Source: Rebecca billardiae RCC1528
Lineage: Eukaryota; Protista; Haptophyta
Length of the DNA: 64,000 bases
NCBI GenBank assembly: GCA_965240325.2
Contig: OZ251236.1
Coordinates: 806,001-870,000 of the forward strand
Direction of reading: 5' to 3'
Below the pieces are notes generated by a model. The model saw only the letters and a list, made by a program, of their open reading frames with translations, was not told the origin of the DNA and made no database searches. Below, in pieces: positions 28,917 to 64,000 of this stretch (position 1 is its first letter; each line of letters begins with the position of its first letter). Made by a program: the position numbers and the translations under genes.

Positions 28917-31426
28917 AGTTGTTGGCCAAGGCGCCTCCAGCGCGGCAGCCGGTGGCGGCGTCGTCGGTGGCGCGGCGGATGGCCCGTCCGCCTCGCTCGT
29001 GCTCGGCGTGTGCGCGGCGTGCGCCACCGCCGCCGCGGCGGCCGGGAGCCTGGAGTCGATCAGCGCGCTCATCCGGGCGGCGAGTGCGATGCGGCCTCAG
29101 CCACCGACACTGGTGGGGGACCTGATGGTGGCGCACGCGTCGGAGCAGCTGCTCGGGCGCACGGCGGTGCACGCGGGAAGCGCGGGCGCCGCGCCGCCCG
29201 AGCCCGCGCTGCTCGACGCGCTTGTCGCCCTCGTCAGCCCGCGCCGCGCGGCGGGCGCCGAGCGCGGCGCCGCGGGCGCGTCCGCCGGCGCGGCGCGGCT
29301 GCCGCTGTCGCCTGAGCACCTCGATGTGTGCGCGCGCCGCCGGCTGCTGCTGGCGCTCGTGCACGCCGCGTCGGACGCAGAGGGCGCGCGCGCGCGCGCG
29401 GTCGGCGCCGCGCTGCGCCGGCTGCCCGCGCACGGCGACGTCGCCGCCGTCGAGGCGGTGAATCTCGCCGAGGCGAGATTGGCGCACGCGGCGGAAGTTT
29501 CCGCGAACGCGCCGCGCGGCGCGGCGGGCGCGGCGCCGCCTCGCTCGCTGCTCGGCGCGGACGCGGCGGAGGGCGAGGAGGGCGGCGGCGCGCGTGCTGC
29601 GAGGCCGGCGCTCTCTCTCTCCGCCGCGCTCGCCTCGCACGGCGGGCTGCGCTGGTCGCTCGAGCAGCTCGAGGCGGTCGCGCGCGCCAAGGCGTGCGTG
29701 CGCGCGTACACGGCAGACCTACTTTCGCATCTGCAGGGGCGCACGCCCGCGGCGGCGCGCGCCGCGGCCGAGGCGGCGGCGGGTGGCGCCGACGGCGGGG
29801 GCGGCGGCGGCGGCGGCGGCGCGGAGGGCGGCGGTGGGAGCGCCGGCGGCGCGGGCGCCCTGCTCCGCGCGCACGCCGACGCGGCGACCGCGCTCCGCCT
29901 CTCGCGCGGCGCGGCGCAACTCGCGCTGCAGCTGCTGCTTCGCGACGGTGGCGTGGACGCGCTTGTGGCCCTGCTGGGCGAGGCGGAGCGGGACGTGCCG
30001 TGGCTGCCGTTCCGGCGGGAGGGCCTCGCGGCGGTGTCGGCGCACGGCGCGGCGCAGCCCACGCTCGACGCGCTCGCCCTGCTCGCGCGCACCTCGCAGC
30101 TGTACGCGCGCGTGTGCGCGTGGGCCGAGCGCGCGCGCACGGCCAACGCGTGGCTCGGCGCAGAGGGCGAGATCGCGGCGCGCGAGGCGATGCTCGCCGA
30201 CGCGGCGCTGCGGCCGTGCGCGGCGGACGTGGCGGGAATGCTCACGCTCACCGCGGCGATGGCGCGCGCGACCGACCCGGTGCTCGCCGCGCCGTGGCGC
30301 GCCAAGCCCCCGGGCTCCGAGTCCGCGCACCGTCGGAAGGTGCGCCGACTCTTCTGCGCGGCGCTGTGCTCAGGGCTGTCCGACACGGCGGTGCGCCAGG
30401 CCGCGCTGGCGATCGGCGCGGTCGGGCTCGACGCGGCGGCGTTCAGCGCGCACAAGGAGGGCAGCGCGCCCAGCGCCGCGCGCCGCCGCGCGCTCGTGCG
30501 CCAGCTCGGCCTCAGCCTCGCGCTGCGCACCGCCGCGGGCTCGACCGGCGGCTGGCTGCACGCGTGTCTGCTCGACCCTGCGTCGCAGGCGGTGTCGCAC
30601 ATGCCCACGTGCGATGGCGGCATCCCGCTCGAGCGGCTGATGGCGACGCTGGGGTACGCCGGGTGGTATCGCTGCCCGAATGGACATCTTTACTCTGTCG
30701 GCGAGTGCACCATGCCGATGGAGGTCGCCAAGTGCCCCAAGTGCGGCGCCGTGATCGGCGGCCGATCGCACACGGCCGTCGCCGGCGTCGTGAGGCTCGG
30801 CACGACTGACGAAATCCTCGAGGAGGCGAAGCGCGGCAACATGGAGAAGCTGGCGAGCGTGCTGCGCGCGGTCGGGCTGGCGGGTGGCGGCGGCGGCGGC
30901 TCGGTCCGCTTCCCGCGGCGCACGACCAGCTGCCCGATCGGCTTCGACCGCGCCTCCTTCGACGCGTCGGACGGCGAGACGATTGTGGACGTGCTGCCGC
31001 GCGCCGACCGCACGACGTGCTCTGTGCTTCGCGTCTTCATGTTCGCGACGTTCGCCGCGCGGCTGGCGATCAACGAGGCGCTGGCCGACGCGGAGGGCGA
31101 GCTGGCGGAGCAGGGCGCGGGCGGGGGCGAGCCCGAGCAGGGGTCGGGCGCGCCCGCCGCCGCGGACGACGACGGTGGCGGCCTGCAGAGCGGCCGAGGC
31201 GGCGGCGCGGGAGGCGGCGGCGGCGCGCGCAGCCGCGGCCGCGGCCGCGGCGCCGGCCACAGCGGCGCGGGCGGCGGCGGCGGCCGCTCGACCGGCGGCG
31301 GCGGCGGCGGCAGCGCCGACGCCGGCTCGGCCGCGCGCGCCGCCCCCGCCGCGGTCGCGGTGCTCAACGAGGGCGGCCTGCGCGCGCTGCGGCGCGACAA
31401 GGCCCTCCTCCGATTACTCGAGGGCA

Positions 31427-33450: not shown

Positions 33451-34421
33451 TGGCGACGCGATGCGAGACGACGTACTGCGGCTGTAGTCGGGCCGTCTCC
33501 GCGGACACGCCCCACGCGCCGCAGGCCCCCCGCGGGCTCGGCCGTCGAGCCTCGCGCGAGCGACCGCCATCGCCACTATCGAATGAGCCGAGCGAGCGCC
33601 ACGCGTGGATCCGGCCGCCAAGTTGAAAGTCCGGGGGAGTTTGCCCCCGCGCACGTAAAGCCAAACTCACAACGGATCCGTCCTCCGGATTTCCTCCGGA
33701 CATTTCTAATGGCCGCCAGCGCGCGCCCACGTCGCGGGGTGGGTCGGCCGGCGCGTTGGGCTCGACCGGCCTGGGGTTGGCTTCGACGCCACCAGCGGGA
33801 TGCCACACTGACTCGGCCATTGGGGCTCACGAGGACGCCTCGGAGTTCAGAGGGTGTGGTGGTCAGACGGGCGTCCCGGTCGTGCGATCGGGCGGCAAGC
33901 AGGCCGGCTGCCTAGCAGCCCACAAACGCGGCGCGCCGCGCGAGCCAAGGCCCTGGCGGGCATCACATGGACGGTACCTGGCCACATGGGTCGCCTGGAG
34001 TCCATTTCCGCGCGTGTGCCGCGCTGGACTGAGTCTACGGCTCAGCCGGAGGCACGACGGGCACAGCCCACGAGCACGGACTGAGTACGACCGCGCGCGC
34101 GTGGCGTGTGCAGCGACGTGTGGGGCCTACCTTGGCGCGCGAGCTCGCGAGCAGCGCGCGGACGACTAGTGCCAGGGTCCCAACTACGATGGCCCGCGCA
34201 CCCGCGCCCTTCGCGGCCTGTGACGGCGGACCAAGGCGGCGCCCTCGAAACGACGAGGGTTGCCGCCATCCTCGAGCGCTTTTCGCGCCCGGCGATGTCG
34301 TTTCTTTTTTTTCGGCCGGCCTAGGACGTGTAACGATTTTTTGTATCCGACGGATGACAGTTGGCAGCGATGCGCATGGAGGTGACCGCGCGACCGCCGA
34401 CAGCGGCCGCTGAATGCTGAC

Positions 34422-37400
34422 TCAGCGTGGCGTGCGCGGCCCCGCCGCCTCCGTTGTCGCGGCAGCACGTCCGTACTGAACACCAAACTCAATCCCTCGG
34501 CGTCGGCAGCGCTGCTCGCGGTGCACGAAGATGGACGTGTGGCACATGGAGCACAGGTGCTTCTTGCACCCGGCGCACGCGCGAGTCGTCTGCTTCACGA
34601 AGCCACCTGGGTCCTCGGGATGGTCGTCCGGCTTGCGCATGCCCTTGCGCAAGGCGTTGCCACGCGGGGTGAACGTCTTTTCGGCGTCCGCGTAGCACTG
34701 CACGCAGTCGCTCTTGGTGGGGAGCGGGTCGCCCTTGCCGTCGAAGAGCGTCTCAGCCTTCGTCAGGTAGCACTTGCGTGGGCGGTGCTGCGCGATTCGC
34801 GAGCCTGGGACGGGACCTGCGCTCGTCCCGCGCATGATGGGGCAGGACAGTGGGCACGGCGGCGCGGCGGTGAGTGGTCGGTGGCGACGCATTGCGCGAC
34901 GGCGTACATTCGCGAGCGCATCGCGCGGTGCCCGCACCGCTCTTCTTGCGCATGAAGTGCGGTGTCTCGTCGCCACGGCCCTGCATGTACTCCGCGCAGT
35001 AGCGTTGGATGCCGTGGTTCATCAGCTCACGGCCGAGTGACAGCTGCCAGTACGTCGAGTACGGGATGCCGGGCTCGCGAAGAAATTTCTCGTAGGACGG
35101 CAGCACGAACTCGAAGACAATCCTCGCGTCGTGCACGATCAGGCCGAGGTCCCAGTAGAACGCTGCGCGCTGCCAGCGGCGACCGACTCGGTTGACCCGG
35201 ATGTTCATACGAGCCTGGTCCTTGTCGAAGCGGTCGACCGGGCCCATCCTCCGCGCGTACGCCTTCTGCGCCAGGAACGACGTGTAGTACTTGTAGGAGC
35301 GGCTGGCTTTGTCGTACCGCCGCGCAAATGTCTCCTCCGCGTCGTTCTGGTAGGTGGTGTACAGCAGGCAGAAAGGCTTCGCGTCGCGCCATTGCGTCGC
35401 GTACAGCCACCACGTACCTCTCCCACGCCGTTGCGTTGAGGCGCCGCTGCCGCTCCCGTCCAGTGGCACGCGCGCAGTGCGACGCCAGCCGCGTGCGAGA
35501 GCGCTCACCACGCTGTTGGGGAGGTCGAACCAGGGCCAGGTGAGCCGTCCGTCTGTGGGCGCGGTGGCGGGCCGCTTCCACTTGTGCGGGCCGACGATAT
35601 GGATGCCGCGAGCGCGGAGCCAGAGCACGACTGGGATGGTCACAAACCATGAGTCGGCAAAGAGGACGTAGCCTTCGTGCCAGTACGCGACGACGAAGAA
35701 GCCAGTGAGAAGGGCGATGAGCACGTTCCCAGCGGCGTTGGCGCTGCCGCCGACGTCAAACTTCCACGCCTTCACGTAGCCCGCGGCGTCGGCATACACA
35801 AACGCCTTGATGCCCCACTTGATGGGCTTGCGTGGCAGGTACCGCAGGATCGGGCAGCGCTTGGAGAGGCAGCGGATCATCGCCTCGTCGAGCGCGATGT
35901 GCTGCAGTGCGTTCCAGGCCGAGTCGCACTTCTTCTGCAGGTCCGTGTCCAGCTGGCGCATCTTGCGGAGCGGGTCGTCCGGGAAATCCTCGCTCATCGG
36001 GTCCATGAAAGACAGCTGCGCGATCACCTTCCTCCAGCTGCGGCGCGCGGTGCGCACACGGGCGTGCGCGCGGGCGCGCGCGTTGGCCGCTCGCGTCTCA
36101 CTCGCGGCGCGCGGCGCATGTGCGCGGCGCACCGCGTCGCCGTGTACGAGTCGTAGATCTCGTCGTCGCGCAGACTGCCCGACCACAAGAAGCTCATCTG
36201 CCGCACCGGCCGCACACCCGCTTTGATCAGGATGCCCATGACGATCAGAAGCTCTGGCGGCGTCAAGTCGTCCCAGTCGTCGACCCGGCGCCTGGCAGTG
36301 AGGCGCAAGGATGCCGGGTCCGACGCCAGGAGTGGGCGCCATAACATCTTGCCAGCAGCGTCCTTGACCTGCGCGTAGGCGCGCGCGCACAACAAGCGCA
36401 CGCCAGTTGGCCAGCAAGGGGCGCGGCGTTAGGGCATGACTCCTCGCATACGCGCGCGCGCACGCGTATGCGCATGCGCGCGCGTATGCGCATGCATGCG
36501 CGCGCGCGCCTCACCTGCACAAGCCATTGCTTGGCGTGCGCGTTCGTCGCGTCGCAGATGCTCTGCAGGATGTCGTCGCTGAAGTAGAATAGGAAGCACT
36601 GCAGCAGCACGAACGCCGGGTCCGGGTCACCGACCGAGATGTCCACCTGGTGCGTGCTCATGTCCATGGCGATACCGGCCGCGGCGAGGAACACGACGAG
36701 CATTTGCGTCGGCCCCGGCTTTGCTCCTGTGAACAGCGGGCCGTGAGCATCGATGTCGGGCTCCTTCCCGCGGGGAGCGTTCGTGCGCGGCGCGCTTGGC
36801 GCCTTGTGGCGCACCTCCTCCCACGGCTCCACAGGCGGCTCGCGCTCAGGTGCTGCGCCCGCCCCGGCGGCGCCCGCGGCGGGCGCCGAGCGCCGTGCTG
36901 CTGCGCCGCGGCCGCGGCCGCGGCCACTGCCCGCGCCGCGGCCTGCGCCGCCGCCGCGACCGCCAGCCTGCGTCGGCTGTGCGGGCTCGAGCTCAGGCGG
37001 CGCGTCGGCAGACGCCGGCAGGTCCGTGCGCATCACGCAGCGCCGCTTTGACGAGTGCAGCCACAACTGCTCGTCCAGCACGATCAGCCGCGCGCCTCTC
37101 GCGCGCGCCAGGCGGCACGACGTGGGACCTCCCAGGATCTCGTGCGCGGATTTGGGTGATGGCGAGGCGCCACGGCGTCGCTTGCCCCGCCCGCGGGATT
37201 CGTCACGATACTCCGCGCGCTTTGCGACGAGGACGTCGACGCACGAGTGGATGAAGTCGGGGTCCTTGCTCGGGCCACTCCGACCGTCGTAGTTGCGGGC
37301 GAACTTCCTGATGTCGGTGCCCGCGACGCCCCACATCTTCTTGGGGTCGACGTAGCCGACGATGCAGGGTGGCCACGACATGCGCGCGCGCGCGCGCGCA

Positions 37401-38122
37401 GCCTCGAGCGCGGGGAGCGCGATCGCCGACGCGGTGACGAGGAGCACCGGCTGTGTTGAGGCGTGGCCCCGGGCGCGCACGATGGCATCGAGTACCTCAG
37501 GCAGCGTGTCGTCGAACGACTTCTTGCCGCAGAGCTCTGCCGCAGTGGGCGCGCCAGGCCGAGGGATGATCTCGCGCGAGTCGGAGGAGCACAGCCACTC
37601 GCGCTCAAGGAGCAACGTGCCCTTGGCGTCGGTCATCGACACAGACACGCCGGTCACGCGCGCCTCGAGTGGCCGCGAATGGTCGGTCAGGTCCACCTCG
37701 ACGGACGCGAAAGCAGCCCCTTGCACGAGCCTCTCCGACTCGTGCAACAGGTGCTGCCGCTGCTGCTTCTTGTCGCCGGTGCTCTGCGTCGGCGGCGGCG
37801 GTGGCGGAGGCTGGCCAGGGCCGGTGGCGCTGTCCAAAGGTACGGCGTCCTCCTCCTCCTCCTCCTCCTCCTCCTCCATGGGCCCGCCGCCGTCGTTGGG
37901 GTCGTCGCCTTCCGACGCGCCGCTCAGGTCCGCGCTCGACACGTCGTTGGTGTTGCCACCGTCGAGAGAACTCGTCTCGTCGTCGTCACCGCGCTGGTAC
38001 ACGTCGTCGGGGTCATGGCGCTTCGGAAGCTCGTTCAGGAGGGGGACACGCGCCGCGCCGCGCCGGAGCGCCGCGTCGCCCTCGCTCTGGCGACGGCCAC
38101 GTCCCGACGCCTTTGGCGCCAT
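34422..38122 (-). CDS. piggyBac-family (PGBD/DDE_Tnp_1_7-like) transposase, 4 exons, ~1112 aa, with N-terminal degenerate DEDD-exonuclease-like domain and C-terminal Cys-rich domain
   Basis: Exons 38122-36515, 36368-36133, 36037-34938, 34816-34422 join in frame (the last acceptor could be 12 nt further). Motifs: FLFYFSDDILQSICDATN, ALDEAM, YLPRKPIKWGIK, FADSWF, WRD, MGPVDRFD, RRW. C-terminal CVQC...CAGCKKHLCSMCH..H. Confidence 0.9.
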
Positions 38123-38244: not shown

Positions 38245-39801
38245 ATGCCGAAGCGCGCGGGAGAGGAGGCTGCGTGTGTCGTCTGCTTCACCGAAGCTGG
38301 CCTCGGCCCGCATCGCTGCGGACTGTGCACGGAAGGCGCTTGGCACGTGTGCCAGAGCTGCGAAGCGAAGCTTGCAAAGCGACGGCGCTGCCCGGTGTGC
38401 CGTTCCGACTACGCGCGCGAGCCGGCAGCGTGGGAGGCCCTCCCACGCGATTCGAAGACCCTCGTGATCAATACGCAGCCCTCGCAGCAGGAGCTCGCGC
38501 AGATCGCCGCGGAGTTCCCGCAGCTCGAGAACCTCACAATCGAGGACGAGGAGCGATTTGATCGGCACGGCGCGGACGAGGACGTGGATCTTGCGCTCGA
38601 CTTCGCACCGGACGGCGTCGCATTCCCGGCCCTTCGGGAGCTCACGCTCAGCGCCGTCAGCGTCAGGGCACTGCGGCTCACCGAGTCGACGTGCCCCAAC
38701 CTCCGCTCGCTCTCGCTGAGCACGCTCGAAGGCGCGGTCGAGGTGTTTGACATTGCGCTGCCGCAGCTCGAGCACTTCGAGGCCGAGCACGTGATGATGG
38801 CCGGGCGCAAGCTGGGCGAGTTCGGGCTGTTCCTGTCGCGCTGCCCACGGCTCGAGACGGTGACGAGCTACAAGCTGCGCGGGCTCGGCCAGCAGAACTT
38901 TGCGGTCACGCCGCGGCTGCGCACGCTCGTGCTCCACCGCGCGGAGGGCCTGGAGCAGCTGCACCTCGTGCACGCGCCTGTGCTCACGGAGCTCTCGGTG
39001 CAAGCGGCGTACTCGCTGGACGACCTGCGGGTGGACCATGTGCCCGAGATGACCGCCGGCAACGTCGAGGAGCTCGTGACGGGCCTCGAGGCCGCGCTCC
39101 TAGAGGCGCAGGCTGTCGCGCACAGCGAGGAGGAGGTGTGGCGCTCCGGCCGCAAAGGCACTCGAGAGGCGCGCAAGCTGCGCTGGGTCGAGCGTGACGA
39201 GGAGCTCGATCTCGAGGACGAGTTCCACCAAGAGATGCTGTGCGAGCACCTGCACACTCTGTGCGCCGCCGAGTTCGCCAAGCGCCGGCAGGCACTGCTC
39301 AGGGACCACTCCATCGCCGTGCCCAGCGATCACCCGCCGAGCCTGCCCGAGTGTCACGTCAACCTTGCCAACGCGAGTCTCTCGAGCACGAGTGTGCAGC
39401 GCCTTCGGCGGTGCCCACGCTTCCGGCCGACGCTTCCGTCTGGCGTCGAGGCCGGTCAGATGGGCTTTGCGTCCTTCGTGCATCCCAACGCTGCCCTTGG
39501 CATGCACATGGACGATGAGGACGATGAGGATGACGAGGAGGACGAGGACTGGCACGGGCATGGTGGTACGGACAGCGACTGCGATTCCAGCGAGGAGGAC
39601 AGTGGCGAAGAGGACGAGGGGGTGGATGGAGAAGACAGCGACAGCGAGGACGATGAGGACGACGAGGGCGAAGAGGGCGAGGGCGAGGGCGAGGAGGGTG
39701 ACGACGACGAACCAGGAGCAGATGATCCTTTCGGCGAGCGCAAGTTGCAGCGCGAGAGAGAGACTTCTGGTGGCGGCGGCCTGACTTGCATCGTGTCTTG
39801 A
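38245..39801 (+). CDS. RING-like zinc finger + leucine-rich repeats + acidic C-terminal tail (putative E3 ligase), 518 aa
   Basis: N-terminal CVVC-x10-CGLC-x5-HVCQSC-x9-CPVCR; repeated PxLxxLxL units (FPQLENLTI, FPALRELTL, CPNLRSLSL, LPQLEHFEA, CPRLETV, PRLRTLVL); D/E-rich tail at ~39510-39720. Confidence 0.75.
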   Translation: MPKRAGEEAACVVCFTEAGLGPHRCGLCTEGAWHVCQSCEAKLAKRRRCPVCRSDYAREPAAWEALPRDSKTLVINTQPSQQELAQIAAEFPQLENLTIEDEERFDRHGADEDVDLALDFAPDGVAFPALRELTLSAVSVRALRLTESTCPNLRSLSLSTLEGAVEVFDIALPQLEHFEAEHVMMAGRKLGEFGLFLSRCPRLETVTSYKLRGLGQQNFAVTPRLRTLVLHRAEGLEQLHLVHAPVLTELSVQAAYSLDDLRVDHVPEMTAGNVEELVTGLEAALLEAQAVAHSEEEVWRSGRKGTREARKLRWVERDEELDLEDEFHQEMLCEHLHTLCAAEFAKRRQALLRDHSIAVPSDHPPSLPECHVNLANASLSSTSVQRLRRCPRFRPTLPSGVEAGQMGFASFVHPNAALGMHMDDEDDEDDEEDEDWHGHGGTDSDCDSSEEDSGEEDEGVDGEDSDSEDDEDDEGEEGEGEGEEGDDDEPGADDPFGERKLQRERETSGGGGLTCIVS

Positions 39802-53117: not shown

Positions 53118-56100
53118 ATGGCGCTCGCGAGGCGCAGTGGGCCCCCCGCCTCCCTCGATGTGGCGGAGGCGCCGGTGCTGCGGCCGTCGGAGGAGGAGTT
53201 CGCCGAGCCGTGGCGCTTCATCGCGTCCGTGCGCCCGCTCCTCGAGCAGTACGGCCTCGTCCGCGTCGTGCCGCCGCCGAGCTGGCGGCCGCGCTTCGCG
53301 CTCGACACGGCCGCCCTCCGGCTCAAGCTCGAGCCGCAGCGCGTGAACGAGCTGCTGGAGCACAACGGCGCGCGCATGAAGTTCATCAGCGAGCTGCGCG
53401 AGTTCCACGACGCGCGCGGCACGCCGCTCGCGCGCATACCCGTCGTCGCCGGCCGCGACCTCGACATGCACAAGCTCTTCCTCACGGTGACGTCGATGGG
53501 CGGCCACCACCGCGTCGTCGCCGCCAAGCGCTGGCCGGAGGTGGTGCAGGCGCTCGGCCTCACGTCGGCGCACTCGTCGTACATGCTGCGCCAGCACTAC
53601 GCCAAGATCCTGCTGCCGTACGAGCAGCACCTCGAGCAGCTGCACGGCGGCACGCTGCCGCAGCCGCCGCCGCTCCCGCCGCCGATTGCCGAGCCGACGC
53701 GCCGCTCGGCCGGCGGCGCGCGCGACGACGTGGTCAGCCTGCCGACGGCGATCGTCGGGAGCGCGGGGCAGACGCGCGCGGCGGAGCGCGGCGACGAGCT
53801 CGTCCGGCTGCGCGCCATCGAGCCGCCGCGCTCCATCTCGCACGAGGCGCTCGTCGCGCGGCTGCTCGCCGTCGAGGCGCGGGTCGCGCCGCGCGCCGCC
53901 GGCGCAGCCGACGGCGCGGGCGCCGGCGCGCGCTCGGCGGAGAAGTGGTCGGACCATCGGTGCGCGCGCGCGGCGCGCGGCTCGTGCGCCGTGCACGCCT
54001 CGCTCATCCCCGCCCCCTCTCGTCCGCGCGCACCGCCCGCACGCCCGCACGCCCGCGCGGCGCGCAGGTCGCTCTGGCGCGAGATGGTTCGATCGGCGCG
54101 CTCGCTGCAGGAGCTCGCGCTCGCGCTCGCCGCCCTCTCGCGCTCGGTGGAGACGGGCGAGGAGGTGCCGATGGGCGAGGGCTGGAAGCGCGTGCGCGAC
54201 GACTGGCTCCGCCAGCTCGTCGCGATCACGCAGGGCCTCGACGGTTTCAGAGACGGTTACGCCGAGGGCTACAATGGCGGTTACAACGCGCTCTATCGGC
54301 TGCTCGACCGTTTCGAGTCGTACCTCCCGGCGGCCGCGGCGGCGCAGCCGGCGCAGCCGGCGCAGCCGAGCGCCACGGAGTCCGCGCCGGAGGGCGGCGG
54401 CAGCATCGGCGGCAGCGGCGGCGGCGGCAGCGACGCCGGAGGCGCCGCCGCCGACGCGCCCGCGCCCGAGCCCGCGCCCGCGCCCTCGGGCGCAGGCGCG
54501 GGCAAGCGGCGCCGCCCCGAGACCCCGCCGACGCGCGCGTCGGCGCGCGGCAGCCACTCCGCCGGCGGCACGCCGCGCAGCGGCTTCGGCGGCGGCGGCG
54601 CGCCCTCGCCGCTGCAGCTCCCCCTGCCCGGCCCCGACGGCGCGGAGGGCGGCAGCGCGCGCTCGCCGCTGCCCACGCCGATCTCACCCGCCGCCAAGCG
54701 GCAGCGAGGCACCACGCCTGTCACGCCTCCCGCCACGGCGGGCGGCGGCGGCGAGGGCGCGGCGGCGGCGGCGGCCGAGGCGGGCGCGTCGGGCGCGCAC
54801 AAGCGCGCGCGCGGCTCGCCCGACGGCGAGTCGCCCGCCACCAAGCTCGCCTCCCTGGGCAACGGCGGCGCCGGCGCCGGCGGCACCAAGCCCGGAGCAG
54901 CGGCCGTCGCAGCCGCCGAGCGGCAGATGGATGCCGCGGCGGCGGCGGCGGCGGCTGCGGCCGTCGCCGCCGCGGGCGGCGACGACGATGGGCGGGCGGA
55001 CGACGGCGACGACGAGGGGAACAGGCCGTCGGACGAAGGCGACGAGAACGAGCAGGACGAGGCCGGCTCCGCCGGCGGCAGCGACCTCGTCCTCGACATC
55101 GAGCTCGCGACGCGCGCGGGCGGCCGCGCGTCAGGCCGTCTCCGCGAGTTGCAGGGCGCGCAGTCGCCGGGCGGCGGCCTGAGCGGCGCCAGCCTCGGCG
55201 GCCTCGGGAAGATGGTGCCGGCGGGCACGGCGGCGGCGGCGGCGGCGGCCGCGGCGGTCGCGGCGATGGGCGAGGACCTCGGCGCCGCGCTGAGCGGCTC
55301 GACGGGCGCCGCTGCCTCCGCCAAGCCGCCACTGCCACTCGCAGCCGCGAGCGCAGCCGCCGGCGCGGCCGCGGCAGCGGCAGCGGCAGCGGCCAACGCG
55401 GCCGCGAACGCGGTGGCGGCGGCGGCCACCGAAGGCAACGGCGCGGGCGGCGCGGTGGGCGCGGGCGGCGGCGCGGCCGCGTCGGCCGGCGCCGCGCCCG
55501 ACGGCGCCCTCTCCTTCCCCGCCTTCGAGCGCCTCTCGCACGCGTTCAAGGCTGAGTTCTTCGGCTCGATGCGGCGCGGCGCGCGCCGCGTCGCCGCCGC
55601 GTCGACCGATTCGTACGTGTCGGCACGCTCGCTCGAGTCCAAGTTCTGGAAGGCGGTGGAGCTGCCGCAGGAGGAGGTGGAGGTGTACACGACGCACGCG
55701 CTGCGCTCCGCCGTCGTCGGCTCCGCCTTCGACACCACCGCCGTCGCCGCCGCCGCCGACGGCCTCGCCCCGTTCACAGCGAGCCGACCGCCGCCGCGCG
55801 CGGCCGCCGCAGCCGCCGCCGCCGCGATCGCAGACACCGCGCCGCCGCCGCCGCCGCCGCCGCCCGTGCCGCCGAGCCACGCGGCGTGGTACCTGCCCAC
55901 GCTCGCGCGCTCGCCCGCGTGCTGCCTCTCGCTCGTGCCCGGCGCGGGCGCGCCCGTCTCGCCCGCGCCCACCCAGCCCCACGTCGCGCCGGCCGAGGAG
56001 GCGAACGCGGCGCTGCGCGAGCCCTCGCTCGTGAAGGTGTCGATGGCAATGGCGGCGCGCACGTGGACGGTTGGCGCGCAGTTCTCGGGGACGATCGAGT

Positions 56101-59100
56101 ACCTGCACTCGGGCGCGCCGCGGAGCTGGTACACGGTGCCCGCGTGCCACGCGGACGCGATGGTCCGCCTGCTCGAGGGCACGCGCGAGGCGCACGACGC
56201 GCTCGCCGTCACGGCCGCGGCCGGCGCGGACGCGGGCGCGCCCGCGGCGGCGAGCGGCGCGGGCGCGCGCGGCGCCGCCGGCGGCGCGGGCGCCGCCGCG
56301 GCGCGCGTGCCGCTCATCTCGCCGACGGAGCTGACCGCGCGCGGGCTGCACGTCTCGCACACGGTGCAGGAGGCCGGGCAGTTCGTCCTCGTCGCGCCCG
56401 CCGCGCACGTCACCTCCGTCGCGCACGGCCTGCACGTCTCCGAGTCCTCTGCGCTGTGCGACGCCGCGTGGCTGCGCTGGTCTGCGCGGCACTCGGAGCG
56501 GTGCCGGCTGTCGCGCACGCCGCCGCCGCTGTGCCACGAGGCGATGGTGGTCGCGGCGGCGGTGGACGCGCGCTCGGCGGAGGACGCGCGGTGGCTGCTC
56601 GCCGAGCTGTGCCGCGTCGTCCGCGTCGAGGCGGCGCTGCGCCGCGCCGCCGCCGACGGCGGGATCGCCAGCTCCGCCGTCTCGCGCGAGGCGGCGGACG
56701 CAGCGCGCGTCGCGACCGCGGCCGAGTCAACGATTCTGCCCGCGACCGCCGGCGCGCTCGGCCTCGGCGCGGGCGTCGCGGGCGGCGGAGCGGGCGGCGG
56801 CGGCGTGGGCGGGGTGGACGCGTGCGCGGACGGCGGCCCCGGCGGCGCCGCCGCCGACTCCGACTCCGACTCCGACTCGTCCGCGGGCGAGGAGGAGGAC
56901 GACGAGGAGGCGGCGCGCGCCCGCCTCGCTCGGCAGCGGGCGTCTTTGCGCGAGGGGGTCCGTCCGCTGCTCAACTCGCGCGCGGAGGCGTGCTGCGAGT
57001 GCGCGGCGCCGTGCGCGCTGTCGGCGGTGGTCTCGAGCGACGGCGGCGCGCGGCGCGTGCGCTGCATCGACGACGCCCTCGCCGCGCGCTCCGGCGCCGG
57101 CGGCTCGCGCCTCGCGTGCAGCCTCGAGTGTCGGCTTCCGCTGCGCGCGCTCACCGATCTGATCCGGCCGTTGCGCACGCTGGCGCGCAAGCGCGCGCGC
57201 TGGCTGGTGAAGGCGCGCGCGGCGTGCGCGGACCGCTCGCGCGCGCCGGCGCTGGAGGACGCGCGCGCGCTGCTCGCCGTCGCCGACTCGCTCTCCCTCG
57301 TCGACCCGCTCGTCGACTGGCTCCGCACCTCCGTGCGCCGAGGCCTTCAGTGGCGGCATGACGCGCGCCGCCTGCTGAGCGGCGGCGGCGGCGGCAGCGC
57401 GGCGAACGCCGGCCTCGGCACGGTCGGCGCGAGCCTGGGCGGGCTCGGGCTCGGCGGCTCGGGCGGCTCGGGGCTGGCGCGCACGGCGCAGCTCCTCGGC
57501 GCGCTCATCCGCGAGGGCCGCCGCCTGCCCCTCCAGCTCTCCGAGCTCCCGGCGCTCGAGACTCTCCGAGATCGCTCTTCCGAATGGGCCTCGCGCGTGC
57601 GCGCCGCGCTGCTCCCGGGCCAGCCTGTGCCCGCGGACGGCGTGACGCGCGAGCAGCTGCACTCGCTGCTCGGCGAGTACGACCGGCGGATCGGCGTGGC
57701 GCACGACGACGCGGCGCGCCTCCGCCGCGCCGTCGCGCGCCTCGACTGGATCAAGACCACCGAGGCCCTGCTCAGCGGCACGCCGCCGCCGCCGCTCGCG
57801 TCGACGGCCGCGGCGGCGCGCGCCGCCAAGAAGCTGGACATACTCGAGTGCACGCCGCGCGCGGGCGAGCTGCTCGCGGTGGTGCAGCGCGCGGAGGCGA
57901 CGGAGGCGCGGGCGAAGGCGGCGCTCGCCAACCGCGTGCCCGTCTCCGCCGCGCGCAAGCTGCTCGCCGAGACGAGCGAGCTGCCGATCGCACTCGAGTA
58001 TACTCCGCGGCTGGCGGCGGCGCTCGAGGCGGCGGCGGACTTCGCCGCCAAGGCCGCGCCACTGCTCTCGCCGGCGGAGGGCTCGGCGCGGCCGTCGCTC
58101 GAGGCGGTGGCGGAGCTGGTGGAGGAGGCGTCGGGGCTGACGCTGCAGACGCCCGAGGAGGACCGGCTCCGCGAGCTCGCGCGCCTCGCCGAGCTCTGGA
58201 GCGCGCACGCCGCCGCCGGCATCCTCCGGCGCGGCTGTGTCACGCCGCTGCCGGATGTGCTGCTGCGCGCGGCGGACCGCGCGACGCGCGACGCGGACGC
58301 GAGCGAGTGGCGGCTGGGCGGCGAGCACTCGGCGGCGGTGCGCCGGCGGATCGACGCGGAGTGCGGCGGCGTGCTCGGCGCCGCCGCCGCCGTCGGCGCC
58401 GCCGCCGACGGCGCGGTCAAGGCTGAGGGTAGCGACGGCGGCGCCGGCGGCGCCGCCGGCGGCGGCGCCGCCGACGGCGGCAGCGAGCTCGGGAGCGCGA
58501 CCGGCGCCGGCGCCGAGGGCGGCCGCGTCGGCGCGGCCGTGTCGGGCCGCGAGCTCGCCTCGCGCGTCGAGTCGGCGCCGTGCCCGTTCTGCGCCTCCGA
58601 GGAGCGCGCGGCGATGCAGTCGTGGATCGCTTGCGACACGTGCGAGACGTGGTACCACTCGGAGTGCGTGCACGTCTCCAAGGCGCAGGCGGAGTCGCTC
58701 GACACGTACCTGTGCCCGGCGTGCGCGACGAAGGCGGGCGTGCCGTACGCGTTCCGGCTGCCCGCGCCGCCCAAGCGCACGCGGCGGCCCAAGCTGCGGC
58801 TGGTGCGCGCGCTGCTCGCCGAGGCCGACACGCTCGGCGTGCGTGTGCCAGCCGTGGAGCCGCTCTCCATACTGATGGTCGAGGCGGAGGCGTGGCAGGA
58901 GACGGCGCAGGCGGCTCTGGCCGAGCCGCCGCTCGCGCTGGCCGCGCTCGAGGCGCTCATGTCCGCGGGCGCGCAGCTCGAGGTGGAGGCGGAGCTGATA
59001 CCCACCGTCGACCGGCTGCGCGACTCGGTCGCCTCGTGGTGCCAGCGCGCCGCGTGCGTCCTCGTGCCCCCGACACAGCTCGTCGAGCTCGCGCCCGCGG

Positions 59101-59274
59101 CCGAGGCTGAGGGGGGCGGCGGCGGCGGCGGCGGCGGCGACGGCCAGGCGGCGCCGGCACCGAAGCAGGAGGAGGGCGCGGCGGAGGGCGGCGGCGGCGC
59201 GCCGGACGCGCCGCCCGCGGCGGACGCGGTGGGCGGGGCGGAGGGCGCGCCCGCGGCTGAGGGCGCCGCGCCCG

Positions 59275-59308
<34 letters not shown>

Positions 59309-61548
59309 GCCGCCGCCGCCCGCCGCCAAGCTGCGCGCGGCCGAGGCTTCGCTTGCGCTCACGCTGCTCGGCGGGTGCACGCCGTCGAGCCAGCGGCGGC
59401 TCACGCTGCACGCGGCGAACGGGCTGCTGCGCGAGGCGCGCTCTCTGCCCGTGGCCCTGCCCGCCGTCGAGCAGCTGCAGCGCGCCACCGAGGCGGCGGT
59501 CGAGTGGCAGGCGCGCGCCGCCGCCACGCTCGATGCTGAGGACGAGGAGGTCCGCTCAGAGGCGGCGCTCTCGCAGCTCGCGCGGGAGGCGGCCGCGCTG
59601 CGCGTCGCGCTGCCCGAGCAGGATCGGCTCACGCGCGAGCTCGCGCAGATGCGCTGGAAGTCAGGCTCGCAGGTGCGCGCCGCGCCCGCGCGCACACGTC
59701 CTCACCCCTCCTTCGCGCGCCGCGAGCGCGCTCTCGCCCGCCGCGAGCGCTCGCGCGCGCGCGCGCTCACGGCTGCGTGCGCGCCCCGCGCCGCGCCGCC
59801 GCGCCCCGCGTGTTCGCGCGCAGGACGAGCTGCTCTCGGCATTGGGCGAGCGCACGCCGCTGCCGCGGCTCAAGCTGCTCGTCGCCGAGGCCAACCGCAT
59901 CGGTCTGGCCGCGCTGCCTGTCGTGCGCGCTGCGCTTACGTCGGTCGAGCGCGCGGAGGCGATGGAGGAGCGCTCGCTCTTCGCGGTGCAGAACCGCGCG
60001 CCGCTCGAGGCGGCGCGGCGGCTGCTCGTCGAGGCTGCGGAGCTGCCCACCGCGCTGGAGAACACCGCGCGGCTCGAGCGCGCCGTGCGCACCGCCGAGG
60101 CCGCCGCCGACTCGGCGGGTCTAATCCTGCGGGGCCGGCGCGCGACACTGGACGAGGTCCGCGCGCTGCTCCGGACGCTGCGCTCCCTCGAGCTGGCGGT
60201 GACGCAGGAGGCGCAGATCGAGTCGCTCGCGGTGCTGGCGGAGTGGTGGTCGTCGAGGCTCGCCGCGCTCGTGTGCAAGCCCGGCACGCCGAGCGACGCT
60301 CCCTCCGTCCTCAAGCTGCTCCGAGAGCTCGCCACCGAGGGGACGGCCGCGTCGTCATCCAAGGGCGGCGGCGCCAAGTCCAAAGCGCGCGGGAAGGGCG
60401 GCGGCGGCGACAAGGCGAGCAAGGCGGCGGCGAAGGCGGCGGCGGCGGCGGCGGCGGACGACGCGGACGACGACGCGGCCAACTCCACCTGCCCGTACTG
60501 CACCGACTCCTCCGCCGCCGCGCGCGAGCGCGAGGCGGCGATGCAATCGTGGATCGCGTGCGACACGTGCGAGACGTGGTACCACTCGGAGTGCGTGCAC
60601 GTCTCCAAGGCGCAGGCGGAGTCGCTCGACACGTACCAGTGCCCCGCGTGCGCGGGGAAGGCGGGCGTGCCGTACGCGTTCCGGCTGCCCGCGCCGCCCA
60701 AGCGCACCCGCCGCCCGCGCCTCCGCCTCGCGCGCGCGCTGCTTGCCGAGGCTGAGGCGCTTGGTGTGCAGCTGCCTGAGATTGAACCTCTGGCGCTGCT
60801 GAGTGCCAACGCGGAGGCGTGGCAGGAGGGCGCGCAGCGCGTGCTCGCGAGCACGCCGCCGCCGTCGACCGCGCAGCTGCAGGAGCTGCTCGCGGCGGGC
60901 GAGACGCTCGAGGTCGAGCCCGAGCTCGTCTCTGTGCTGCGCGAGGCTCTCGGGGTGCGCGCGAGCGCGCGAGCGCGCGCGGCCGCCGAGCTCTCGGCTG
61001 CCGAGCAGCGCGCCGGTGCGGGCGTGTGTGAGTGAGGCTGGGGCGCGCGCGCGTGCTCACGCGCGCCCTTGCCGGCGGTGCCGGTGCCGCCGCTGCGCTG
61101 TGCGCAGGGCATGCGCGCGGAGGAGTGGAAGTACACGCTGGCCGCGCACCGCTCGCACTTTGAGCGCGAGCAGCACAGGCAGAGCAGTGCGATGGTGCGC
61201 GCGCACGCGTGTGCGCTCGTGCGTCTGCGCGTCTGCGCGTCTGCGCGCGTGCGCGTGCGCGTGTGCGCGCTGTCTGAGCTGCGCGCGGTCGCGGGCCTCA
61301 CACGCCACACGCACTCACGCCGTCCGCGTCGCGTCGCGTCGCGCCGTGTGGCTGCGCGCCGCGCGCGCCCGCGCCTTGCTCGCTGCGCAGGTGCTCCAAA
61401 ACATGATGGCTGCCGCCGCGGCCGGGCAGCAGGGCGCGCCGCCGTACGGCGACGCGCAGCTGCACGCGGCGCACATCGCCGCGCAGCAGCAGCAGGCGGC
61501 GGCGGCGCAGCAGGCGGCGGCGGCGCAGCAGGCGGCGGCGGCGGCGGC

Positions 61549-61583
<35 letters not shown>

Positions 61584-62823
61584 CGCAGGCGTCACACTCA
61601 AAGCAGGCCGCGGCGCAGCTGGGCGTCTCGGCAGCGCAGTGCCCGTGCGCGCGCGCGCAGATGGGCGGCGGCGCGATGGGCGCGATGGCGATGACGCGCG
61701 CGCCGCCGCAGGGCGCAGCGTGTGCAACCAGCGCCGGGCAGTTGGGCGGACCCCACGCGTGCGACGGCGCGGCGCACGCCGCCTCGGCCGACTCTGCCGC
61801 GGCGGTGCAGGCGGCGGTGCAAGCGGCGGTGCAGGCCGCGGCGCAGGCGGCGGCGCAGGCAGCGGCGCAGGCGGCGCAGCAGGCGGCGCAGCAGGCGGGC
61901 ATGCAAGGCGGGCAGGGACAGCCCTCGGCCGCGCACATCGCGCAGATCATGGCGGCCGCGCAGCGCGCCGCGCAGCAGGCGGCGATGCAGCAGCCGCAGC
62001 ACGCCGCCATGCACCCGCACGCGGCGCACGCGGCGCAGGCGGCGGCGCAGGCGGCCGCGCAGCAGGCGGCCGCGCAGGTGGTCGCCGCCCAGCACGGGCT
62101 GCACCTGCAGCAGCCGCCGCCGCACGCGCACCCGCACGCGCTGCATGCGCAGCCCACGGCGCAGGCGCAGCTCGGCGGCGCGCGCGTCGCGCACGTCCCC
62201 CCGGTGCACGCGCACGCGCATCCGGCGGCCGCGGCGGTGATGCACTCGCACTCGGCACACCACGCCCACGGCGCGCACGCGCACCTGCAGCCGGGCGCGG
62301 CGGCGGGGCACCAGGTGCACGCGCCGCACCACGCGGCGGCGCACGCGCACGTGCACGCGCACGCGCACGCGGGCCACCCGGCGCACGCGCCGCACGCGCC
62401 GCACGCGCAGCACGGCGCGGGGCACCCGATGGCCGCGGGGCACGCGCAGCCGTACGGGGGCCAGCAGCAGCGCATGGCGCACGGCGGCGGCCACGGCGGC
62501 GGCCACGGCGGCGGCCACGGCGGCGGCCACGGCGGCGGCCACGGCGGCGGCGGCGCCCCGATCCACATCGTCGTCGCCACGGACCAACACGGCAAGCAGC
62601 TGCAGCACACGCACCCGCAGGCGGTGATGCCTCACCACGCCGCGCGCGCGGCGCCGATGCAGCAGCCGGGCGCGGGTGCGGTCGCGCTGGCGCAGCCGAT
62701 GGCAGGCTCGCCGTATGAGGCGCATGCGCATGCTGCGCAGCACGCGCAGCACGCGCAGGGGCACGCGCACGCGCACGCGCACGCGCACGCGCACGCGGTG
62801 GCGCAGCAGCAGGCGCAGCAGGC

Positions 62824-62859
<36 letters not shown>

Positions 62860-62910
62860 GCAGCCGCAGCCGTCGCCGCAGCGGCTGCATGCGCAGCAGC
62901 AGCAGCATGC

Positions 62911-62965
<55 letters not shown>

Positions 62966-63883
62966 GCGCTGCAGCAGCAGCATGCGCAGCAGCAGCAGCA
63001 GCAGCAGCAGCAGGCGCAGCAGCCACAGATGGCACAGCCGTTGCACCAGCAGCCGCCGCAGTCGCAGCAGCAACCGCAGCAGCCGCAGCCGCAGCGCAGG
63101 CGCACCTCCGCTGCGCCCTCGCCAGTGCCAATGGCGGGGGCTACGCTCGAGCCCGGGGCGCCGCCGCCCGGCGCGCCGCCGCCCGGCGCGCCTGCTCCGA
63201 AGCGCGGCGGGGCGCCGACGCCGCCGCCGCAGGCGCGCACAGAGGAGCCCCCCGACGGCGCGAGAGGGGCGCCCGCGGGCGCTCTGCCCTCGGCCGACGC
63301 ACTGGGTGGCCCGTTGGCGCGCACACCCACGCCGCCGGCCGCGCCGCGCGACGCCGCGCTCGCGCTCGGCACCGCCGCCGCCGCAACCGCTCTGCTGGCC
63401 CCGCCGAGCGTTGCCGCCGCGGAGGCTGGCGCCGCCCCGGCGGCGCGGCGCTCGCGCACGCCGACCCCGCCGCCGGAGGCCGTGCTGCGGGCAGTCGATC
63501 CGCAGCCTGAGCAGGAGCAGCGGCCGCGCACGCCGCCGTTCGGCGGGTCGGACGAGGACGAGGCGGAGGTGCCGGGCGGCGCCGGCGCGCTTCTGCCGCC
63601 CGTGCCGCCGCCCGCACCGCCGCCCGCGCCGCAGGATTCGCATGGCATCGCGCCGCGCTCGCCGGCGCGCGCGTTGCCCGGCGCGATGGATGTCGAGGAG
63701 CAGCCGCTCGCGCCCGCGCCGCCGCGCCCTGGGCTGGCGGCCGGCGGCGCGGGGCAGGCTGCACTGCTGCCCGCAGCAAGCACCGCGGATGGCGGCAATG
63801 ATCATGATGGCGGCGCTGAGCAGGGGCAGCAGGGCGAGGGCGGCGCTGATGCCGGTGGCGCCGCCTCGCCGATGGAGGAGTAA
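53118..63883 (+). CDS. KDM5: KDM5/JARID1-like chromatin protein: JmjN-ARID-(inactive JmjC)-degenerate C5HC2-PLU1-PHD-PLU1-PHD-Q/H-rich tail, ~3385 aa
   Basis: Introns 53960-54067, 59673-59823, 60955-61107, 61195-61390. JmjN APVLRPSEEEFAEP..YGLVRVVPP; ARID LDMHKLF..V..MGG...RWPEV...LRQHYAKILLPYE; JmjC-like EYLHSGAPRSWYTVP and QEAGQFVLVAP; two PHDs WIACDTCETWYHSECV. Joining of the last two exons is less certain. Confidence 0.85.
62810..63095 (+). repeat. Coding (CAG)n poly-Gln tracts
   Basis: Interrupted CAG runs encoding the poly-Q of the KDM5-like tail. Confidence 0.9.
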
Positions 63884-64000
63884 TCGTCGTGACTACAGTA
63901 GTGTGCAGCATCCCGTTCGCGGCTTCGAATCGAAGGAGCCCGCGCGTTTCAATAATATAGGATAAGACTATACAGGCGGTTCAGACGCGATGATTTTCAG

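Follow-up and report, generated by a model that had tools for sequence, protein, structure and literature searches.

The locus described here raises the question of what a globular stretch is doing at the N terminus of a piggyBac transposase, a place where canonical piggyBac proteins (e.g., that of T. ni) normally have only a disordered, regulatory tail and no folded domain. The gene lies on the minus strand of a 64,000-nucleotide (nt) stretch of Rebecca billardiae RCC1528 (contig OZ251236.1 of assembly GCA_965240325.2, positions 806,001 to 870,000); the whole stretch is called the window below, and all positions are counted from its first nucleotide. A previous interpretation of the same DNA, made from its letters only (the sequence-only reading), had proposed a degenerate DEDDh (DnaQ-like) exonuclease domain on an otherwise intact transposase. 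Our analysis leads to a similar answer, to which we assign, as a whole, a probability of roughly 0.8: a DEDDh-derived domain is fused to a piggyBac transposase, its active site has decayed, and it now presumably serves as a non-catalytic module.

An intact sister element and the identity of the domain

A sister element, P0130, in which the DEDDh residues are intact, was found to encode RNase_T and DDE_Tnp_1_7 in one open reading frame (ORF). In a 5.8-billion-sequence collection, the transposase core of the window gene had a single non-self relative at an E value of <1e-5, namely P0006 (746 amino acids [aa], 35% identity). P0006 was considered as a domain-less relative and rejected, a cluster look-up having identified it as a truncated call of P0130, which is 1135 aa long and has the domain. 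The P0130 ORF is continuous and intron-less (3408 nt), lies on contigs of 3.6 to 3.9 kb (L024-L027), and was present in four independent assemblies, one of which is a Tara Oceans metagenome scaffold. It matched Pfam RNase_T PF00929 at aa 182-312 (E 6e-11, 43.5 bits versus a cut-off of 24) and DDE_Tnp_1_7 PF13843 at aa 502-901 (E 2e-45); its precomputed public Pfam annotation already lists both families. The exonuclease motifs of P0130 are complete, comprising DIETTG, AHN..D, and H-x-A-x-x-D-A (H-x4-D). Its layout is that of the window gene, with an acidic N terminus followed by the exonuclease region, a linker, the DDE core, and a Cys-rich tail. A search of the P0130 contig for terminal inverted repeats (TIRs) and TTAA sites found none, nor were inverted repeats visible in the flanks of 70 to 250 nt, and the four contigs probably end before the termini of the element are reached.

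The relationship between the two elements was first of all evident in the transposase. Exon 3 and P0130 shared 34% identity over 399 columns (E 6e-58), with core identities of 34 to 36%, and the two cores were reciprocal best matches: 196 bits compared with 87 for the next locus, the next-best match of P0130 itself scoring 102. Beyond P0130, the next relatives were ordinary piggyBac genes without an exonuclease domain, and no DEDDh match was obtained in 42 other metagenomic piggyBac loci that were scanned. The window ORF containing exon 3 matched DDE_Tnp_1_7 PF13843 with 72.5 bits (cut-off of 22.4, E 5e-20). Its Asp motifs LDEAM, ADSWF, and VDRFD, which we take to correspond to D268, D346, and D447 of T. 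ni piggyBac, align in invariant columns with IDESM, MDSFF, and VDRID of P0006/P0130. The Cys-rich C-terminal domain that is characteristic of the superfamily is present as predicted exon 4. A canonical piggyBac gene such as the 662-aa ORF of contig L029 shares the DDE_Tnp_1_7 core, the three Asp motifs, and the Cys-rich C terminus. Judged by its sequence, the window gene is thus a predicted multi-exon piggyBac-superfamily transposase that has kept the core with three Asp motifs and the Cys-rich tail, in line with the earlier description of the transposase as otherwise intact.

The globular stretch belongs to the same ORF as the beginning of the transposase. From the ATG at 38122 to the GT donor at 36514, 536 codons could be read without a stop or frameshift, and every peptide string quoted in the sequence-only reading was recovered in this frame. 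The span that it had assigned to the domain, 37711-37220, corresponds to aa 138-301 of the 536-aa exon 1, with FASVEVDLTD at its very beginning (aa 138, nt 37711). The first conserved piggyBac segment of exon 1 begins at approximately aa 465, and in a tblastn search P0130 aa 469-531 mapped to window positions 36730-36512, a part of exon 1 that shares its frame with the domain. With domain and first transposase-homologous segment in one ORF, the fusion is therefore independent of splicing, and the objection that exon 1 might not be joined to the transposase is moot. GC contents at the three codon positions were 0.67/0.52/0.87 in the domain versus 0.60/0.47/0.86 in the transposase exon; since the two patterns match, the frame of the domain is taken to be the coding frame.

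The domain was then compared with genuine DEDDh exonucleases by profile alignment. Aligned together with a paralogue recovered from Logan contigs (runs ERR14847148-50), it scored 31.7 against the exonuclease domain of P0130 in hhalign (E 3e-4, probability of 39%), the 109 columns in register extending from strand 1 past Exo II. None of 200 column shuffles reached this score (mean 12.8, standard deviation 2.3, maximum 20.7). Genuine DEDDh proteins aligned to P0130 in the same manner spanned 14 to 58, RNase T and Orn scoring 30.7 and 32.3, respectively. A second target was a DEDDh profile of 18 sequences, consisting of E. coli DnaQ, RNase T, ExoX, and Orn and 14 phage exonucleases; a homologue search with E. 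coli DnaQ had returned only orthologues of at least 88% identity, which were useless for such a profile. The domain scored 20.3 with the paralogue and 19.1 as a single sequence; the aligned region, whose register was as expected, extends from strand 2 up to and including the helix that precedes strand 4. Shuffled sequences averaged 11.8 (standard deviation 2.0, maximum 19.96), and neither any of the 400 shuffles nor any of 56 unrelated natural segments (maximum 15.2) attained 20.3. DEDDh was the family named in the sequence-only reading before this test was run, and the DnaQ-like resemblance that it had noticed is confirmed, at the level of sequence, to exceed chance.

Searches in Atlas, which compares proteins by means of a protein language model, pointed to the same family. 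All Pfam-bearing neighbor clusters in the first search were RNase_T or Exu_RNase_H_like. When the trimmed domain was used, 27 of the 30 named neighbors were RNase_T, with scores of 0.91 to 0.93. These neighbors come from phages, Bacillota, and Pseudomonadota, and base composition is therefore no explanation for them.

In structure prediction, the first AlphaFold model (predicted local distance difference test [pLDDT] score of 36) showed a DnaQ-like order of three strands, two helices, a strand, a helix, a strand, and helices. Among the best 50 Foldseek matches in PDB, almost all were DEDDh nucleases for both low-pLDDT models, including Orn/REXO2, ERI2, 3'hExo/ERI1, TREX1/2, RNase T, and the exonuclease domains of PolC and DinG. 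This enrichment among matches to predicted models is striking. The structure check that the earlier interpretation called for thus ranks DEDDh nucleases first, although with models of low confidence. The alignment supplied to AlphaFold was not seeded with DEDDh sequences, as this would have been circular.

Several results weigh against the proposed identity. Pfam searches with the domain and its paralogue pieces gave no match even at an E value of 10, so that the gathering score of RNase_T PF00929 was not reached. Nothing relevant was retrieved by PDB sequence searches with the domain, either as a single sequence or as a small profile, and nothing at all by a word-indexed search of the 5.8-billion-sequence collection with the domain alone; a metagenome scan with the domain likewise gave no match. 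An exhaustive phmmer search of 1.84 billion sequences yielded one true match, a 147-aa fragment of the paralogue (P0002). The plain HMMER comparison with the DEDDh profile was marginal, with 63 of 2000 shuffles reaching the real score (p ~0.03). BLASTP between the window and P0130 domains was non-significant (E 0.44), and the window sequence stripped of its paralogue rows scored 16.9 against P0130 in hhalign, within the range of the null; the significance of the P0130 alignment therefore requires the small profile. Both AlphaFold models were of low confidence (pLDDT of 36 when only the single sequence was supplied and 44 after paralogue pieces had been added), and the Foldseek matches, with E values of 0.009 to 0.4 and template modeling scores of ~0.2, fell under the usual thresholds. 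At the level of the gene and element, the splice model is a prediction from sequence, TTAA does not occur between window positions 30000 and 39972, and the surroundings of the gene contain no convincing inverted repeat, the paralogue contigs (L001-L003) ending before the element ends. A phmmer search in PDB with the exonuclease domain of P0130 was also blank.

Three further phmmer matches (P0001, P0003, and P0004; E 4e-27 to 4e-7) were rejected as spurious, consisting of 7 to 16 weak tandem repeats in repeat proteins. Each repeat weakly matches a query stretch of 30 to 40 residues, for example, CIVGYVDPKKMWGVAGTDIRKFA, and the case illustrates that summed multi-domain scores can mislead.

The absence of any significant match to the single sequence would suit an alpha/beta domain of other ancestry, or else an ordered linker segment, that mimics the strand and helix order of DEDDh proteins by chance. 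Foldseek matches obtained from low-confidence models are formally unreliable, and one-third of shuffled proteins likewise received ten Atlas matches from the same family. Nevertheless, four methods converged on a family that had been named beforehand, a genuine RNase_T domain occupies the corresponding place in the nearest relative, and the controls with shuffles and real proteins were exceeded, so that we regard an unrelated fold as very improbable. Five individually weaker lines (Atlas, Foldseek, hhalign to the DEDDh profile, the layout of P0130, and hhalign to P0130) agree on a DEDDh origin. The evidence therefore supports a degenerate DEDDh domain as the best explanation of the N-terminal globular stretch; this part of the earlier proposal is upheld by the P0130 alignment and the Atlas and Foldseek rankings, although both three-dimensional models were of low confidence.

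State of the active site and constraint on the domain

The sequence-only reading had described Exo I and Exo II as altered, and the alignment to P0130 bears this out. At Exo I, the change from DxE to ExD is exact, E142 lying opposite the Asp and D144 opposite the Glu. At Exo II, HN..FD has given way to T230-A231-S232, and a deletion of 4 residues immediately downstream has removed the Asp (hhalign versus P0130). At Exo III, where the alignment is of low confidence, D296 aligns with the Asp; the His has either shifted by one residue or been lost in a 7-residue gap. The window domain thus does not contain the five-residue DEDDh catalytic set (Asp and Glu of Exo I, Asp of Exo II, His and Asp of Exo III), and the paralogue carries the same active-site changes. 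Mutagenesis of epsilon, RNase T, and TREX1 has established that activity is abolished once any one of the four acidic residues is missing. Since Exo I is swapped, Exo II is gone, and Exo III is disturbed, exonuclease catalysis has probably been lost.

It can be asked whether the DEDDh-derived domain might still be catalytic, holding metals through the swapped E142/D144, D296, and nearby acids such as E240, and trimming 3' ends. Both Exo I carboxylates remain at positions i and i+2 of strand 1, an Asp lies opposite the Exo III Asp, the domain is under some constraint, and the intact active site of P0130 suggests that activity matters to the clade. However, the Exo II His-Asn-Asp has been replaced or deleted and the spacing or presence of the Exo III His is disturbed, and the mutagenesis results quoted above speak against tolerance of such losses. 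We consider residual catalysis to have only a slim chance of being correct.

Constraint was estimated by comparing the window copy with the paralogue contig L001. The nonsynonymous (dN) and synonymous (dS) divergences were 0.21 and 0.39 in the domain (ratio 0.54), 0.49 and 0.56 in the N-terminal flank (ratio 0.87), and 0.46 and 0.54 in the linker (ratio 0.85); L001 is a pseudogene, and these ratios thus mix neutral and selected time. The reading frame of the domain is conserved in the paralogue. As far as such a sequence comparison can tell, the domain is under moderate purifying selection and more constrained than its flanks.

These values bear on whether the domain is a functionless relic, i.e., an exonuclease decaying as a spacer within the transposase of a possibly dying element. 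The lost catalytic motifs and the blindness of Pfam to the domain are compatible with a relic, as are the frameshifts and internal deletion in at least one family member and the lack of recognizable termini. On the other hand, the 536-codon ORF is intact, nonsynonymous change in the domain is less than half of that in either flank, and the named Atlas neighbors are still of the RNase_T type. A relic is accordingly judged unlikely, and a retained, probably non-catalytic DEDDh-derived domain is the interpretation followed below.

Proposed role and comparison with known systems

In the scenario that we favor, a DEDDh (RNase_T/DnaQ-type) 3'-5' exonuclease would have been fused N-terminal to a DDE core in the ancestor of a small clade. 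In this ancestor and in P0130, the exonuclease may act on the 3' ends that arise in cut-and-paste transposition. The active site would then have decayed in the window lineage through the Exo I swap, loss of the Exo II His-Asn-Asp, and shortening of Exo III, and two-metal exonuclease chemistry is most likely gone, to judge from DEDDh mutagenesis. What survives could be a fold acting as a non-catalytic module that grips a nucleic acid 3' end, RNA, or a partner protein during transposition, much as in Exuperantia.

Exuperantia and Maelstrom are animal host proteins in which altered DEDD/RNase H-like domains are used for RNA binding. An Exu RNase H-like cluster was among the Atlas neighbors of the window domain, and Maelstrom was among its Foldseek matches. 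The functional analogy that we propose is a fold of exonuclease origin which, its active site having degenerated, is kept as a non-catalytic module; neither animal protein is part of a transposase.

The pairing of a DDE transposase with an exonuclease-type domain in one ORF, found here in the window gene and P0130, recalls the design of KolobokD and Dada. KolobokD elements are eukaryotic DDE transposons of the Kolobok superfamily that target TTAA and carry their own DEDDh/DnaQ exonuclease, which their authors likened to Exuperantia, TREX, and ERI1; the hosts are molluscs, arthropods, and cnidarians (PMC9587614). They resemble the window gene in combining a DDE transposase with a DEDDh-type domain, and the structures to which their exonuclease was likened also top the Foldseek lists of the window domain. 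Compared by description only, they differ in belonging to Kolobok rather than piggyBac and in having an exonuclease described as a DEDDh nuclease, not as degenerate. In Dada of Laccaria and Ectocarpus, a DEDDy DnaQ-like 3'-5' exonuclease resides within the DDE transposase (PMC3706591). Dada thus also has a DnaQ-superfamily exonuclease in the same protein as the DDE transposase, but the domain is of the DEDDy type, is inserted between the catalytic residues, and conserves all four acidic residues, whereas the window domain is N-terminal. For both Dada and KolobokD, a role of the exonuclease in 3'-end processing during transposition was proposed by the authors (PMC3706591, PMC9587614).

Full-text searches of a literature collection returned no account of piggyBac with a DnaQ-type domain. 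Within that scope, the combination of piggyBac with a DEDDh exonuclease appears to be undescribed, whereas that of a DDE transposon with a DnaQ-type exonuclease is already known from KolobokD and Dada. After Kolobok and Dada, piggyBac would thereby be the third superfamily in which the recurrent association of a DDE transposon with a DnaQ-type exonuclease is seen.

piggyBac ranks among the major tools of genome engineering and has repeatedly given rise to domesticated genes. A natural clade with an intact exonuclease in one member and a degenerate one in the other offers a ready-made comparison: P0130, with a domain that passes the Pfam RNase_T threshold, DxE/HN..D/H-x4-D kept, no introns, and ~61% GC, can be set against the window copy, with a degenerate domain, three predicted introns, and 70 to 80% GC. 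Such a comparison makes it possible to ask what cut-and-paste transposition gains from a 3'-5' exonuclease and how a pseudo-enzyme originates inside a transposase.

A bolder proposal, which we put forward tentatively and hold to be more doubtful than probable, is that P0130 represents an undescribed clade of marine-protist piggyBac elements with a working DEDDh exonuclease and that the window gene is a retained pseudo-exonuclease, perhaps on its way to domestication. If this were true, the exonuclease of the clade would process the 3' ends of transposon or donor DNA, or it would act on small RNAs of the host, destroying or sequestering them in the manner of ERI-1. The window gene would then represent the next step, a binding module in an intron-bearing copy that lacks recognizable termini, beside a host RING-LRR gene. 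Domestication would fit the intact ORF, the introns, the lack of recognizable TIR/TTAA ends, and the RING-LRR gene 123 nt upstream; the existence of a decayed, internally deleted copy of the family counts against it.

Gene model, paralogous copies, and surroundings

The features of the locus are listed in Table 1. After removal of the three predicted introns, the window gene is collinear with its intron-less relative across the core and the Cys-rich tail. From N to C terminus, exon 1 is composed of an acidic low-complexity region, the DEDDh-like domain, a Gly/Arg/Ala-rich linker, and the first conserved piggyBac segment. Predicted exon 4 has C-x2-C motifs in common with P0006/P0130, and the exon is conserved in the paralogue L001.

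Table 1. Features of the transposase locus (window coordinates)
Feature	Position	Strand	Basis or remark
Exon 1 (536 codons)	36515..38122	-	Continuous ORF; tail matches P0130 aa 469-531
DEDDh-derived (RNase_T-like) domain, aa ~136-310	37193..37717	-	hhalign, Atlas, Foldseek, dN/dS; probably non-catalytic
Exo I, E142-V-D144	37691..37699	-	Aligned to P0130 D-I-E; carboxylates kept but swapped (ExD versus DxE)
Exo II, T230-A231-S232	37427..37435	-	Opposite A-H-N of P0130 'VAHNGNSCDF'; His-Asn replaced by Ala-Ser
Possible Exo III remnant, H292-S-C-V-D296	37235..37249	-	H-x3-D versus H-x4-D; low-confidence alignment
Predicted exon 2, piggyBac N-terminal region	36133..36368	-	GT..AG boundaries read; collinear with P0006/P0130
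Predicted exon 3, DDE_Tnp_1_7 catalytic core with Asp motifs	34938..36037	-	PF13843; 3' boundary predicted
Predicted exon 4, C-terminal Cys-rich domain	34420..34804	-	Collinear with P0006/P0130 C terminus; acceptor and end approximate
Predicted introns (n = 3)	36514-36369; 36132-36038; ~34937-34805	-	GT..AG read from sequence
RING-LRR gene (518 aa)	38245-39801	+	N-terminal Cys motif of the RING type (weak Pfam match); F-box/LRR-like repeats (PF24758, E 4e-11); long acidic tail

Two kinds of copies were present in the Logan contigs. One contig (L004) was 99% identical to the window copy, with a 3' part that was identical in the alignment, and probably represents the same locus. The other three (L001-L003) derive from a second copy with ~80% DNA identity, which is frameshifted and has exon 1 (at ~aa 455) joined straight to the Cys-rich exon. 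In L001, the transposase ATG and at least 52 nt upstream are kept, the homology running to the end of the contig. Internally deleted copies are typical of DNA transposons, and since one exists here, the family has been mobile.

The deletion itself was located by comparing L001:1380-1440 with window positions 36760 and 34804. It joins exon 1 (after 'EPDIDA') to the predicted acceptor sequence of the last exon, and its junction, with a 4-nt GCTC microhomology, coincides with an exon boundary. Abortive gap repair could be the cause of this internal deletion.

Predicted intron 1 (36369-36514, minus strand) consists of alternating purine-pyrimidine units of the CGCATG/CGCGCATA type, which form both direct repeats and palindromic ones (families D11 and D18). 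The RING-LRR gene is arranged head to head with the transposase gene, its start lying 123 nt from the transposase ATG. The GC content across the window varied between 62 and 81% in 2-kb intervals, reaching 77 to 81% in long stretches of positions 6000-34000 and 54000-64000 and amounting to 63 to 70% in the block of 34-50 kb that bears the transposase gene and its neighbors. The mobile element may thus sit in a compositional island formed by this lower-GC block.

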